Of a DNA stretch of 124,000 nucleotides, positions 35,914 to 122,406 are shown piece after piece; the first letter of the stretch is position 1, and each line of letters begins with the position of its first letter. A program made the position numbers and the translations under genes. Source of the stretch: Octopus vulgaris (lineage: Eukaryota); NCBI GenBank assembly GCA_951406725.2, contig OX597819.1, forward strand, positions 25,192,001-25,316,000. The letters run 5' to 3'. Under the pieces are notes generated by a model that did no database searches, was not told the DNA's origin, and saw nothing but the letters and a program-made list of their open reading frames with translations.

Positions 35914-35958
35914 CGTGTGCTGATGACGGGTCAATATCCAGAAACTGCAGTCCGTGCG
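35914..35958 (+). ncRNA. Type-I hammerhead ribozyme motif (C.A variant at stem II base)
   Basis: CGTGTG-CTGATGA-C-GGG.TCAATA.TCC-A-GAA-ACTGCAGT-C-CGTGCG: palindromic stem III, GUC triplet, wobble-rich stem I. Confidence 0.6.
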
Positions 35959-37045
35959 TATCACTTAGGTTGACGAAGGAAGGATGACCTCCCTTTGCAA
36001 ATACCGATAGGGCACAGAAAGTGTGCCTCTAGCCAGCTGGAGAAGATGTTCTCCTGGGGCTACAAGCTACAGTAACATCCACCCTTAGTGGTTAGCCATA
36101 TTGAGATGGCAAATATACTTCACATTGTTTGTCTGTTATTTTGATTATATGAAGTCTTAACTGTAGAAAGTGTATTAAGGGGCAGGAGTAGCTTAGCTTA
36201 GTGTAGCCATCACTTGCAAGCAAGATTGATTTGGTAACACATACCATGCTTTCACTAACTATTATAGGTGCTTATATAGTTACAAGGAGACTCAGGCACC
36301 CACTCAGCAGTCCCAACCTTTACCCAGCATTAAAACCAGGATGTGAATGCCAAAGGAAGAAAGGACTGAACCAGCACTAAGCTACTATTCAGCTTCAGCT
36401 AAGTAATCTAGGGCAGTGCTCTGCAAGCTTTTTTCACTTGCAGTATGCTTGTATTCTTTTCAAAATGTAGTGGCACACCTGAGCTAAAAATATAACTAAA
36501 AGTATAGGAAAAATAATTATATTCAGGTTACACTGCGGCACACCTGGCATCATCTCGTAACACACCAATGTGCTGTGGTATGCTGGTTGCAGAGCACTAG
36601 TCTAACACAAAGCGAAGTAAAGTTCTTTGCTCAAAGATACAACACATTATCTGATTGTGAAATTGAACCCAAGACTTTATGATTGTGGTCCCAGCACCCT
36701 AACCACTAAGCCTGTTAGCTTTTAGTACACAGAGTATCTAACATAATAAGAGATACTGCTATGCATTTATTCATATTTCTATACTAGCATGAGTTAAATG
36801 AATACATATTATTAAGACATTGTTTTACAGCCAGATGTCCTTCCTGTGACTAACTCTTACCTGTTTATCAAGTGAATGAGAGTTCATTCCACTTGAATTT
36901 GGAAGTTCTTGAGCTACTGGATGATTTGTTGACAGGGAAAGGTCAACAAAGGTTATCAGCCATGGCTAGGTGATTTTCATACAAAACACAAAATCTAAAG
37001 ATTCACACATGCACACATGTATATAAATATATGCCCTCTGCCATT

Positions 37046-37108
37046 AAAGCCTGACGAATCATCTATAGAGCTTAAGTGCATTATGGATGTGAAACCATTG
37101 GTCACTCT
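37046..37108 (+). ncRNA. Degenerate hammerhead motif (core intact, stem I damaged)
   Basis: CTGACGA 37051-57, extended stem II, GAAA 37091-94, ACCA.T.TGGT stem III, GUC; stem I AAAGC/ACTCT has two mismatches. Confidence 0.45.
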
Positions 37109-40100
37109 GTGACTGGACATATATTTAACTGTATGTAAATACATTACTGCTCTACACTTTAGAGCGTGCTTTTTTTTCGGATATATGATCCACTGATGAT
37201 ATATATATATATGGGCATGGCTGTGTGGTTAGGGAGCTTGCTTCCTAGTTACATGGTTTCGGGTTCAGTCCCACTGCGTGGCACTCTGGGTAGGTGTCTT
37301 CCACTATAGCCTCGAGCCGACTGGAGCTTTGTGATTGAATTCGGTAGGTGGGAGTTGCTGCCGTGTGTGTATATGTGCGGGTAGGTGCTTGTGCCTCTCC
37401 GAAAGAGAGAGAGGGATATCACGTGATCTTGTGACTGACCAGGCTATCAGATGTTGCTACACATCGCTGGTCACAATGCACTTCGCATTGTTTTAGCCTT
37501 CAAATGACACCACCGCGCTGGCTAAGTGAGCAAGCCAACAGAAGAAAGAGTGAGAGAAAGTTGCGGCGAAAGAGTATAGCAGGGATCGCCAATACCCCAC
37601 CCCACTGGTGGAGCCTCGTGGAGCTTTTAGGTGTTTTTGCTCAATAAGCACTCACAACGCCTGGTCTGGGAATCGAAGCCGCGATCCTATGACCGCGAGT
37701 CCGCTGCCCTAACCACTGGGCCATTGCGCCTCCACACACACACACACACACACACATATATATATCAGTCTGTCTGTTCAACATGTTTCATTCAATTTCC
37801 ATCTATAAAATTCACTCACAAGCATTGGTTGATCTGGAGCTATAGTAGATAATACTTACCTAAGGTGCTGTGCAGTGAGATTGGGTTTGAAAATAATCGT
37901 CAGTGAAATAAACTTTTTAACTACAGCCATGACCACACCTTGCTAGGTTGCTTCATTTCCATGTTTATAACATTTCAGAAAATTCTTGACATCATGCCCT
38001 CAACTTCACTTGCCTAAAAATGATTTACTTTTGTATCTCATTCTACTAAAGACCTAGTTGGTTTACTAAAGGCTTACTTCTGCTCTATGATACACTTTCT
38101 GCTGTTGAGATTTCATATAATGAAAATAATAACTAAGATGGTGGAGGTGCAATGGTCCAGTGGTTAGGGCAGCGGGCTTGCGGTTGGAGGATCACGGTTT
38201 CGATTTCCTGACCGGGCGTTGTTTGTGTTTATTGAGCGAAAACACCTAAAAGCTCCACGAGGCTCTGGCAGGGGGTGGTGGCGACCCCTGTTGTACTCTT
38301 TCACCACAACTTGCTCTCACTCTTTCTTCCTGTTTCTTGAGTAATGCTGCCATGGACTGGCGTCCCGTCCAGCTGGCAGGGGGAACACATATGCCACAGA
38401 GACTGGGAAACCGGGCCCATGAGCCTAGCTAGGCTTGAAAAGGGCACATAAAATAAAAATGTTAACTAAGATGTCATAATAGAATAAGCATTAAGGAAAA
38501 ACTACAACAATGGTTATTGAGTTGGAAGGAAACAATACCAATCAACTGTGGTAACTTAGGTTTGTCATGAGACCTAGGACTCATAAGGCCTGAGCTAAAC
38601 TTAGTTTGCATGGTGTATAAGTGACTGGGATTACAAAACTTCCCACTGGATGGGCTACCAGTCCTTTAGAGAATTAACTCTAAAGGATTGGTTAGAGTCC
38701 TTTAGAGATTTAAAACTGAGAGGACTGAACCAATGTGAAATGAAATCATCGTCATCATTCAACATCCGGTGTCCTCTTATGCCTGACTTCACTCTCAGAA
38801 CAATACCAATGTGTCAAACATGTACACTTACATTACACATATAGCAGAACATACTAGCCCCTTTGCATGTCCTCTGCGTTCAGGGCCCACGTCTCACTAT
38901 CATGTAGAATTGCTGTCCATATACATGCATCATACACTCTTCCTTTCACTCGGAGAGAGCACCACCCAGTCTAATAATCTGAAACATGATTGTAAGTTCC
39001 TGAGTGCAACACCCTTATCTCTAGGCCATGCACCTTAACTCTTTGACAGCACCCCAGAAAAAAAGAAAAAATCTTTTTCAGCACCTGAGCACTGTATATA
39101 ATAATTTTATTATTATAGTATTAAGATAAGCTATTTTTAAGTCTCAGTCAGAGAGAGGGTTACACTGTTGACCCCTACTGCAAGGTGTCTGAGGTTAATG
39201 GGAGCAAAATGGCAGATAAACCACAATTAATGGCTTATTCTCAAACTAGAGACCTGCTCTGAATGCTTATAGCAGAGTAGTCTCTGCTAAAGTCACACAT
39301 GGTCAGATGGTGGTGTTCAGCTAGGTGTTTGCTGATGATTTCAAAACAGAATGAAATGATATACATAACTACCTATTACTAATAGAAAAAAGAAAACTAT
39401 TCAGAAAAACTGCTATAGCCCTGGGCCAACCAATGCCTTGTGAGTGGATTTGGTAGACTGAAACTGAAAGAAGCCTGTCGTATATATGTATATATATATA
39501 AGTGTGTGTGTATATGTTTGTGTGTCTGTATTTGTCCCCCTAGCATTGCTTGACAACCGATGCTGGTGTGTTTACGTCCCCGTCACTTAGCAGTTCGGCA
39601 AAAGAGGCCGATAGAATAAGTACTGGGCTTACAAAGAATAAGTCCCAGGGTCGATTTGCTCAACTAAAGGCGGTGCTCCAGCATGGCCGCAGTCAAATGA
39701 CTGAAACAAGTAAAAGAGTAAAAGAGTAAAGAGAGTAGATATGTATATTCTGTGCATCTTCCTTGTTCCATTTAGATTTAGGATTTGAACTCCTCACTCT
39801 GTCATGATTTATCATTCATCAACAAGTGATTATCTCCCTTAAAGTAACTGCCACCCAGGTACCACATGTTCAAAAGACTCAAGTGTTTTCAGAATAATGA
39901 AATGCATTTCAGAAACATTTTTGAATTCATTATAAAAAAAATCAAATAGACAATGATAATAATTCAAGATATATAATATGTAAATATACTTTTAGCTTAT
40001 ATTATATCATTTTGCGATAGACCTGAGTAAGTCTTTTCCAGTTTTGGATAAATTCTTAGCAAGGTTAATCCCTTGCAGATGGATTTAGTACTGACAGTTT

Positions 40101-40139
40101 GTGCTGTGTACTGGTATTAGATGTACAGTAACTACATAA

Positions 40140-121300: not shown

Positions 121301-121909
121301 TGTAAAATGTTATAAAGACGCCGTAAAAATGTCCTTAAGTAATTTCCTTCCTAGTTGACAAATAAAAACAAACAAAAATCAAATGAAAAAAAAACCAAAA
121401 AAACAAAGTCTACCGGCAATTATTAGTGACTCTCAAAGAAAAGGGAAGATAATTTCAAAGCAATTAACAATTAATCTTTCAAAGTTAATTGAACATGCTT
121501 CGATGAAGGAAAACATGAATTTTGTTAACAGTCAAGAAGCAAGGAATGTTTAAGCTTTCATTCCTATTGCTGTTTTATTTAAAACATTCTAATAATTGAA
121601 TTTCACGCATTGAATTAACTAGGTTTCCATTATTGTTTAGCTCCTAGTCAACACTGCCATGAACAATCTGAACTAAATTATCTTATGTAACCCTTCCCAT
121701 CTTCTGTTTTGATATATATATATACATATACATATATATATATATATATATATATATATATATATATATATATATATATATATATATATATATATATATA
121801 TATATATATATAACGGGAAGCTTTATGAAAATAAACAAAAGACGAATGCAGGTGGAATACAAACAAACAATTGTATTAGTATGGCGCTCAGGAATATAAA
121901 TAAAACAAG

Positions 121910-121947
121910 TCTTTTACGTTTCGAGCCTACGCTCTTCAACAGAAAGA
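121910..121947 (-). ncRNA. Minimal hammerhead, CUGUUGA core variant
   Basis: Minus: TCTTT-CTGTTGA-A-GAGC.GTAG.GCTC-GAA-ACGT-A-AAAGA (GUA). Confidence 0.65.
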
Positions 121948-122361
121948 TACACAGAAAAGAAACACGGAAAGAAACAAGAAGAGAAAAAAATGCGTGCAGA
122001 AGCTACCGAATCAACATATATATATATATATATATATATATATATATATATATATATATATATATGTACATATGTTTATTCCCTCCCTGCTTGAGGTTAC
122101 CGTGGTCTTTTCCGTAGGCTTTTCTTTCCGCGGATAAACCTAATCTTGCTTTTTACATTTTAAAAATTCTTCTGTGATATACGATCACTTTTGATCGGAA
122201 TTTTATTTTATTTTATTTATTTTCGAAAAGGAAAGCTCAACATTTGTATTTGTGCCCTCTGTGTTCAGCCCTGTGTGGCCAATAAAGAAAGTTATATAAA
122301 TATATATATATTTACATTATTTACATTGGACAGATATGTGTCCTCATCTTGTTTGTTGTTT

Positions 122362-122406
122362 ACACAACGTTTCAGCTGATTTACTCTCCAGTTTTCATCA
122401 GGTGTC
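122362..122406 (-). ncRNA. Hammerhead motif of the 61-kb family, stem II partly decayed
   Basis: Minus: GACAC-CTGATGA-A-AACTG..CAGCT-GAAACGT-T-GTGT. Confidence 0.5.

Follow-up and report, generated by a model that had tools for sequence, protein, structure and literature searches.

A 124,000-nucleotide (nt) stretch of the Octopus vulgaris genome (assembly GCA_951406725.2, contig OX597819.1, positions 25,192,001 to 25,316,000 of the forward strand; here called the window) carries a dense set of hammerhead ribozyme motifs and one decayed coding copy of a Penelope-like element (PLE). Eight motifs are complete and fall in six repeat families that are unrelated in sequence. We consider it highly probable that the motifs of the window are minimal type-I hammerheads of the kind carried in the pseudo-long terminal repeats (pLTRs) and 3' regions of PLEs, and that they were left as 3' stubs by insertions primed from both target strands. 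A first-pass annotation had proposed about 17 hammerheads; hammerhead-like arrangements do occur at 16 to 17 of its 18 coordinates, and the set lies far above chance, but with only eight complete sites the number of intact copies had been overstated.

Dinucleotide-preserving shuffles of the window served as the null model for the descriptor searches. A strict canonical descriptor found 4 loci in the window against a mean of 0.04 in the shuffles, and the PLE minimal hammerhead ribozyme (min-HHR) descriptor, which allows an unpaired nucleotide between A9 and position 10.1 and requires a helix II of at least 4 bp, found 5 loci against 0.0. The extended descriptor adds to the latter an optional unpaired nucleotide 3' of helix II, a variant first met in external PLE ribozymes, and found 8 loci against a mean of 0.11 (200 shuffles, maximum 2), so that the shuffled control proposed in the first-pass annotation returned a far lower density than the native sequence. 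With one core mismatch allowed, 7 loci were found against 0.8 in shuffles, which yield about 0.8 to 0.9 loci per window when one core mismatch or helix defect is tolerated; relaxed matches alone are therefore no evidence. Two covariance models were trained outside the window, R1 on 6 external sequences and R2 on 22 external PLE ribozymes with zero window sequences.

Self-BLAST grouped the sites into seven families (A1, A2, B, C, D, E, and F), which bears out the earlier count of at least six unrelated contexts. Because membership was set by flanking homology and not by the hammerhead motif, comparison within a family is a fair test of structure. The 18 sites listed earlier comprise 8 complete motifs, 3 with one defect, 5 decayed family members, 1 borderline case (79493), and 1 unsupported case (37046). 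The sites are given below, with a slash at the predicted cleavage position.

1427-1468, minus strand: possible relic, outside the span noted earlier; CUUUG CUGAUGA, weak helix II, GAA ACAUGU C/CAGAG; R1, the small external model, gives it 20.2 bits and E 0.015-0.03.
35914-35958, plus strand: family B, complete; CGUGUG CUGAUGA C-GGGU..AUCC-A GAA ACUGCAGU C/CGUGCG; helix II flanked by unpaired C and A, helix III an 8-nt palindrome.
41152-41243, minus strand: family A1, complete; extended helix II hairpin of about 60 nt, palindromic helix III ACGAUCGU.
41322-41476, plus strand: inverted head-to-head A1 partner, 5'-truncated within the ribozyme (retaining ..UUGAAAUGUA/AAAUC..) and followed by the tail; its arm 41366-41476 matches 41004-41115; absent from the earlier list.
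43483-43543, minus strand: family E, complete except for an unpaired C before G12; left half of a 200-nt palindrome, 43460-43659.
43577-43636, plus strand: family E, decayed (A15.1 lost, CGAAC); right half of the palindrome 43460-43659.
53415-53461, plus strand: family A2 fragment, 5'-truncated within the ribozyme (GAAAUGAUUGUA/CUG.. and tail), then TA-rich sequence; an addition to the earlier list.
57958-58020, plus strand: family F, complete singleton; UUUGAG CUGACGA AAGA..UCUU GAA ACGUUGACGU A/CUCAAA.
59230-59320, minus strand: family A2, decayed along the 3' strand of helix II, with an intact core, helix I, and palindromic helix III ACAAUUGU.
59922-59965, plus strand: family C, decayed; U4 to C, helix II mismatches, helix III deletion.
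60984-61029, minus strand: family C, complete; GACAC CUGAAGA A GGCUGG..UCAGCC GAA ACGU U/GUGUU; a textbook PLE min-HHR and the left half of the palindrome 60931-61157.
61060-61105, plus strand: family C, decayed core (U4 to C, A6 to U); right half of the palindrome 60931-61157.
79491-79527, plus strand (79493): borderline singleton of the C/D class; CCGACGA core (U4 to C), bulged A, GG/CC, ACGU, short helices.
82555-82642, minus strand: family A2, complete; element 82519-82650, with the 3' tail abutting (TA)n.
83912-83999, plus strand: family A2, complete; element 83903-84035, ribozyme sequence identical to 82555.
103673-103904, plus strand: family D element with a hammerhead at 103741-103778; UCUUU CUGUUGA A GAGC..GCUC GAA ACGU U/AAAGA (A6 to U).
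107578-107618, minus strand (listed earlier as 107572): family B, partial; an intact core with helices II and III, but no complementary 3' strand to form helix I.
107820-107866, plus strand: family B, complete; CCUGGG CUGAUGA C-GGGU..GCCU-A GAA ACAUGCGUGU C/CUCAGG.
115947-115986, minus strand: relic of a PLE partner; UAAAC CUGGUGG U-UGC..GCA-U GAA AGUACU A/GUUUA; two core A-to-G changes, absent from the earlier list.
116295-118279, plus strand: decayed PLE open reading frame (ORF) with reverse transcriptase (RT), CX4CxxC linker, and C-terminal GIY-YIG endonuclease (EN).
121816-122017, minus strand: family D element with (TA)n on both sides; hammerhead at 121910-121947, A6-to-U core.
122362-122406, minus strand: family C, near-intact; the core reads CUGAUGA, helix I has 4 bp, and helix II holds a single A·C mismatch.

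Two further candidates were set aside. A relaxed-scan candidate at 72728 (plus strand) was judged a chance match, and an inverted pair at 120921-121100, with CUGARGA and GAAA about 75 nt apart in each arm, has no helix I or III and is no hammerhead.

Chance matches to a short, permissive pattern could arise in AT-rich, repeat-rich DNA, and some entries have that character. Chance is the best reading for 37046 (plus strand), a singleton with poor helices I and II that scored 10 bits (E 3.6) with R2, and a possible one for the singletons 79493 and 1427, which lie near E 0.02 to 0.09 with roughly calibrated models; 72728, the shuffle background of the relaxed descriptor, and the silence of the Rfam hammerhead models belong on the same side. 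For the set as a whole, chance is refuted by eight complete loci where 0.11 are expected, by compensatory changes within families, by E values down to 5e-8 with an external model, and by a consistent orientation and (TA)n context, and we give it practically no credence.

The exact core (C3 U4 G5 A6 N7 G8 A9 ... G12 A13 A14, A15.1-U16.1, and H17, which is not G) is present at the eight complete sites and at 59230, 107572, and 122362, and helices of 4 to 7 bp occur in the eight complete sites. Elsewhere it departs by A6 to U (103741 and 121910), U4 to C (59922 and 79493), both of these changes (61060), loss of A15.1 (43577), or A6 to G with A9 to G (115947). Within family A2, helix I of 59230 differs from that of 82555 by two double compensatory changes and one wobble change with zero disruption, and the helix III palindromes (ACAAUUGU and ACGAUCGU, respectively) differ by one double change that keeps self-complementarity. 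The family B copies 35914 and 107820 differ in helix I by two double and two single compatible changes and in helix III by one double change, and their helix II varies solely by G-C/G-U and U-A/U-G. For the partial family B copy, BLAST homology to 107820 stops exactly at the predicted cleavage nucleotide (C17). One reading of this break is an RNA template that terminated at the ribozyme cut; weak resemblance resumes past an indel of about 11 nt, so that it may be a simple rearrangement.

Helix III consists of a palindrome in most families: ACGU in C and D, ACGAUCGU in A1 and A2, ACAAUUGU at 59230, ACUGCAGU at 35914, ACGUUGACGU in F (with a G.U pair), and AGUACU at 115947. A small hairpin takes its place at 107820, 107572, and 43483. 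An unpaired nucleotide between A9 and 10.1, together with a G10.1-C11.1 pair, is present in families C and D and at 79493; there is no such bulge in A1, A2, E, and F, and in B helix II is flanked by C...A. At least two ribozyme classes can be distinguished. Class 1, with no bulge and a palindromic helix III of 6 to 10 nt, comprises A1, A2, F, and the 115947 relic, with B and E resembling it; class 2, with a bulged A and the 4-nt ACGU palindrome, comprises C and D. The presence of at least two classes points to at least two source lineages. RNAcofold predicted homodimers for A1, A2, and F, formed through an intermolecular helix III with helix II kept, which is the classical dimeric hammerhead.

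The elements that carry these motifs are short. The A2 element (about 130 to 180 nt) consists of a short leader, an 88-nt ribozyme, and a 30-nt tail, which ends at (TA)n in the minus-strand copies 59230 and 82555 but not in 83912; the elements around 82555 and 83912 are 98.5% identical over 133 nt and stand head-to-head across 1.25 kb of unique DNA. Family C elements measure about 115 to 165 nt. Both copies of family D (about 200 nt) share the termini ATGTTGATTCG...CATAAAGCTTCC and have unrelated flanks, and they therefore represent two independent insertions. The earlier proposal of several PLE-derived nonautonomous families is accordingly upheld for family D, which is a true nonautonomous element because both copies share both termini; the other families could equally be 5'-truncated 3' stubs of autonomous PLEs.

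Curated Rfam hammerhead models (RF00163, RF00008, and RF02275-7) gave no match over the whole window either at gathering thresholds or at E <= 10, nor did Rfam match a hammerhead in 121-nt and 251-nt subwindows centered on the two cleanest candidates. The check with RF00163 suggested in the first-pass annotation thus turned out to be uninformative: among six PLE pLTR hammerheads used as a control, Rfam missed four and scored the other two at 20 to 22 bits (best, 21.8) against a cutoff of 52. The Rfam negative carries no weight, since bona fide PLE hammerheads are missed as well, and the curated models fail to cover the minimal PLE class. R1 was weak, placing most window sites at E 0.2 to 5 (a variant realigned with MAFFT without L004, one of the external PLE loci, performed worse and was discarded). 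R2 gave the following matches.

60984: 39 bits, E 4.6e-8.
122362: 27 bits, E 9e-5.
103741: 26.8 bits, E 1e-4.
121910: 24.6 bits, E 4e-4.
61060: 23.9 bits, E 6.5e-4.
79493: 16.1 bits, window-scale E of about 0.09.

Recovery by R2 was limited to the class with bulged A and ACGU, and it is the strongest independent support for families C and D only. Together with the match to the published min-HHR architecture, it agrees with the earlier view that these structures are of PLE type.

The link between such ribozymes and coding PLEs is direct in other loci. Nine full-length relatives of the window PLE were taken with their flanks (L001 to L009), and a profile search added 80 PLE loci. A complete ribozyme lies 3' of the ORF in five of the nine (L001, L002, L003, L004, and L006), L007 has a degenerate copy, the ribozyme of L008 is cut by the contig end, and none was seen in the flanks of L005 and L009. 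L001, the closest intact relative, carries UUCAC CUGAAGA U-CGUC..GACG-U GAA AGUGCU U/GUGAA about 145 nt past the stop codon, and some 100 nt beyond the ribozyme the contig runs out in (TA)n; L006 likewise ends in (TA)n. In L003, the ribozyme is present in both pLTRs, and in L006 a ribozyme 3' of the ORF is joined by an inverted one on the far side of a (TA)n run. The two L006 motifs (3046-3334) are different PLE-type hammerheads on opposite strands, placed tail-to-tail, an arrangement that suggests repeated independent insertions into one microsatellite.

Across the 89 external loci (398 kb), the extended descriptor found 36 complete ribozymes in 29 loci, compared with 0 to 1 in shuffles; the ORF strand carries 34 of the 36, and in 5 loci flanking pairs lie 3.4 to 4 kb apart. 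Among 28 distinct external ribozymes, 21 have the 5'-only bulge and 7 do not; 3 of these 7 have no unpaired nucleotide at the ends of helix II, and 2 carry one at each end. The additional nucleotide preceding G12 in the window also occurs in L001, L004, and L006. A ribozyme physically within the pLTR or 3' region of an RT/EN-coding element is thus found in 29 of the 89 external loci, to which the 115947 relic can be added; families A to F are solo fragments.

The decayed PLE with RT and GIY-YIG noted earlier at 116 to 118 kb is confirmed. Its ORF is interrupted by frameshifts, stop codons, and an inserted segment of about 200 nt (116761-116963), and a Pfam search of its stop-free pieces, which are short and decayed with PLE-like motifs, gave nothing significant. 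An exhaustive HMMER search with a 150-amino-acid piece returned 929 relatives; the full-length ones (about 700 to 820 amino acids) are matched near the C-terminus and carry RVT_1 and GIY-YIG. By tblastn, residues 39-633 of the best relative (P0001, 698 amino acids, with Pfam RVT_1 and GIY-YIG) align to 116295-118249 at 46 to 61% identity, and other relatives stretch the match to 118279. With its sequence CNDNRCGTC, the linker conforms to the CX2-5CxxC motif, which Craig et al. 2021 (PMC8557442) ascribe to the clades Neptune and Nematis, and this motif is the single character that suggests a placement of the element as Neptune/Nematis type.

No 3' end or ribozyme of the plus-strand copy is recognizable, with no plus-strand core motif from about 114.5 to 121 kb. 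The 115947 relic lies on the opposite strand, about 310 nt upstream of the ORF match and hence at the 5' end of the ORF relic, and it has in common with L001 an unusual U..U-flanked helix II and a 6-nt palindrome. It shows no similarity to the 3' flank of the PLE, and a direct pLTR pair was not found. Inverted, 5'-truncated copies adjacent to the 5' end have been described for PLEs (Craig et al. 2021, PMC8557442), and the 115947 region is such an inverted, truncated partner.

Two further features were seen in and around this element. The insertion that interrupts the ORF (116769-116952) is an inverted copy of 115568-115753, upstream of the PLE, to which it is 86 to 91% complementary; the upstream copy adjoins a (GTAT)/(CATA)-type microsatellite, which suggests a local rearrangement or a second small element. 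Motifs like TGACGTCA, a palindrome of the cyclic AMP response element (CRE) type, occur with a 55-nt direct repeat just upstream of the hammerhead in PLE 3'/pLTR regions (116090-116215; L003 at about 3790-3830; the 3' flanks of L007 and L001), and they may belong to the internal promoter that PLE pLTRs reportedly contain.

Inverted pairs and neighboring (TA)n had both been described as frequent, and both descriptions can be sharpened. Six inverted pairs were found, and all six are head-to-head: the left member of each lies on the minus strand and the right member on the plus strand, with the tails outward. For 12 of 19 sites, a (TA) run of at least five units occurs on the 3' side at a distance of up to 250 nt, compared with a background of 18% (P = 1.4e-5), whereas the 5' side, with 3 of 19, is at background level; the association is thus one-sided. 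PLE insertions are heavily 5'-truncated, often with an inverted truncated partner (PMC8557442), and purified PLE protein, in contrast to R2 or L1, both cleaves and extends the two target strands (PMC11167929). The head-to-head rule and the 3'-only (TA)n fit two-strand target-primed insertion into microsatellites with heavy 5' truncation.

A simple sequence of events would account for these patterns. In this PLE lineage, a gap of 90 to 300 nt separates the RT/GIY-YIG ORF from the ribozyme downstream, which lies some 100 nt short of the element's 3' end. PLEs integrate by target-primed reverse transcription, which begins at that end and usually aborts early, so most insertions would be 3' stubs of 130 to 230 nt that still hold the ribozyme. 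Because the ribozyme lies near the 3' end and would be retained by truncated cDNAs, about 20 ribozyme-bearing fragments could accumulate per single ORF relic. The endonuclease would nick both target strands, here mostly in (TA)n microsatellites, and both 3'-OH ends would prime cDNA, giving head-to-head inverted pairs with the tails outward. The short palindromic helix III would let two RNA copies pair as an active dimer that trims multimeric or read-through transcripts, and such palindromes are thought to allow dimer cleavage in multimeric transcripts (PMC4209133; PMC6765202). The copies in the window are solo or inverted, and neighboring copies on the same strand belong to different families with incompatible palindromes; judged from these arrangements, most copies are therefore probably inert fossils.

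Several observations weigh against a PLE origin by two-strand priming or limit its reach. Families A to F share no detectable sequence beyond the motif with the window PLE relic or the external loci, and BLAST of the external loci against the window returned coding similarity only; the PLE origin of these families is argued from architecture and insertion signatures. The Rfam hammerhead models are silent in the window. Families A1, A2, B, E, and F were recovered by neither R1 nor R2; a helix II of great length, or the additional nucleotide preceding G12, sets them apart from the commonest PLE class. For them, shuffle statistics, covariation within families, and the analogy with L001, L004, and L006 argue for membership. 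The binomial P value for (TA)n is optimistic because paired sites are not independent, and a dinucleotide microsatellite lies within 300 nt on the 3' side of only 3 of 36 external ribozymes, many of whose contigs end early. Both copies of family D carry A6 to U, a change at a core position that canonical hammerheads cannot do without according to classical mutagenesis. Finally, PLE min-HHRs cleave poorly in vitro, and ribozyme-dead mutants still insert (PMC4209133, PMC11167929), which makes the functional role of the motif uncertain.

From the A6-to-U change shared by two independent family D insertions, we infer that catalysis may be dispensable for mobilization. One could go further and suppose either that the family D master copy, an otherwise perfect PLE-type hammerhead, was dead and that PLE-dependent elements keep the fold for something other than self-cleavage, for example recognition by the PLE RT/EN, or that CUGUUGA is naturally active, and that the extra nucleotide before G12 (B and E; L001, L004, and L006) is an undescribed variant of the core/helix II junction. 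We offer this extension tentatively and think it rather unlikely.

Metazoan non-LTR retrozymes, short tandem repeats with canonical type-I hammerheads whose RNAs cleave themselves and circularize into small circular RNAs, would be another source of such sequences. Unit sizes of 130 to 230 nt (about 200 nt in family D) and low GC content fit their range of 150 to 450 nt (PMC7229834), the homology of the 107572 copy ends exactly at the predicted cleavage site, and a 2026 preprint that derives retrozymes from PLE pLTRs blurs the boundary between the classes. At no site, however, did the program TRF find a head-to-tail array with a period of at least 60, and copies found by self-BLAST are only inverted or dispersed. 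The motifs have no closed helix I for contacts between loops 1 and 2, and they belong to the "minimal" PLE class, which PMC7229834 keeps apart from retrozyme hammerheads; moreover, the termini of family D lie away from the cleavage site. A retrozyme origin is therefore improbable.

Still smaller is the probability, in our estimate, that these are elements like short interspersed elements (SINEs), with their own RNA polymerase III promoter and an embedded hammerhead, as in the schistosome Sm-alpha/Sj-alpha. This class is listed as known in a review (PMC6765202), the elements here are short and dispersed, and family D is defined at both its 5' and 3' ends. A B-box-like GGTTCGAAA lies 20 to 30 nt upstream of the ribozyme in three of the four family C copies, but no A-box was seen and Rfam found no tRNA-like fold at the hammerhead sites. 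PLEs leave as their signatures head-to-head pairs, a variable degree of 5' truncation, and insertion at microsatellites (PMC8557442), and a SINE mobilized by a PLE would still depend on it, so that this alternative is partly a subcase of the PLE explanation that we prefer. The B-box-like motif reads GGTTCGAAA(T)TCC and has diverged to GGGTTCAAAA in the fourth copy; the family C leaders span 59879-59921, 61036-61059, and 122407-122457.

The window is AT-rich (25 to 43% GC), with many (TA)n and (CA)n microsatellites and dispersed repeats. No host protein-coding gene was seen in it, and the long ORFs are microsatellite artifacts or other mobile elements. Its sole Rfam match at gathering thresholds is a metazoan signal recognition particle (SRP, 7SL) RNA, matched over the full length of the model at 68986-69271 (plus strand; 188.9 bits, E 1e-49); the alignment partly lacks the 5' Alu-domain hairpin region, so that the locus is a gene or else a recent pseudogene. 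A non-LTR retrotransposon that appears intact occupies 95555-99240 with 92305-92877 (both plus strand), with a 455-amino-acid ORF1-like ORF followed by a 752-amino-acid ORF with RVT_1 (104 bits); its upstream 191-amino-acid ORF has no Pfam match. At 51936-52457 (minus strand), there is a fragment of a PIF1-like helicase (PF05970, 88 bits), as in Helitron-type transposons. A G-rich minisatellite at about 108500-110500 (plus strand), in which a unit of about 36 nt (...GTGTGTTGTGATGAGGGTAGCAGTGGGAGT...) recurs about 50 times, causes the extreme GC skew (+0.64) at 108 to 112 kb and long spurious ORFs. A SINE-like dispersed repeat of about 130 to 150 nt, unrelated to the hammerhead families, has 19 BLAST matches in the window at 73 to 83% identity (among others, 37200-37351, 45241, 55219, 56004, 61182, 66682, 67542, 70105, and 74355), and one copy directly adjoins the family C palindrome.

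The phenomenon itself is established, and the biological surprise is small: such motifs number thousands per genome in many invertebrates, and their presence in huge numbers and across many genomes of metazoans, in many variable families, has been described (Cervera & de la Pena 2014, PMC4209133). What a single 124-kb window displays is the footprint of PLEs, with many ribozyme-bearing 3' stubs per coding relic, and the six head-to-head pairs and 3'-only (TA)n are in vivo footprints consistent with the two-strand cleavage and extension seen in vitro. Genome annotation would underreport PLE ribozymes unless a PLE-specific model were used. For specialists, the points of note are the A6-to-U change of family D, the extra nucleotide before G12, the 50- to 60-nt helix II, the pair rule with its one-sided (TA)n, and the failure of Rfam on the minimal class.

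Among known systems, the Rfam families Hammerhead_1 and HH9 (RF00163 and RF02275) have the catalytic core and three-helix junction in common with the window sites. Non-LTR retrozymes (PMC7229834) form head-to-tail arrays with canonical, efficient hammerheads, whereas the window has no tandem arrays and motifs of the minimal class; like them, the window elements are short, AT-rich, noncoding repeats with type-I hammerheads, probably mobilized in trans and possibly derived from PLE pLTRs. Unlike intact EN-positive PLEs, the sole coding copy in the window is dead and without its own 3' end, but it resembles those of Neptune/Nematis type (PMC8557442) in its single ORF with RT, CX2-5CxxC linker, and C-terminal GIY-YIG, and the wider set of elements agrees with them in heavy 5' truncation, an inverted 5'-truncated copy at the 5' end, a ribozyme in the terminal region, and insertion into microsatellites. 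A (TA)n bias is documented for Naiads, and a microsatellite bias has been only hypothesized for Neptune (PMC8557442). Close counterparts are also the PLE min-HHRs (PMC4209133), which are mostly solo motifs in truncated PLEs and sometimes opposite-strand pairs. From their consensus, the window departs in the helix II extended to 50 to 60 nt (A1 and A2), the helix III palindromes of 8 to 10 nt (A1, A2, B, and F), the extra unpaired nucleotide that precedes G12 and corresponds to a 10.1/11.1 mismatch (families B and E, and also external L001, L004, and L006), and the core CUGUUGA of family D; some of these variants (A1, A2, B, D, E, and F) may already be described by Lunse, Weinberg & Breaker 2016. 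The traits in common with the window are the type-I layout with a CUGANGA...GAAA core and a very short palindromic helix III that implies dimers, a long helix II with a helix I of 4 to 6 bp, a frequent unpaired nucleotide between A9 and 10.1 with G10.1-C11.1 (C and D here), many divergent families per genome, and motifs mostly solo in truncated elements, with some opposite-strand pairs 100 to 700 bp apart.

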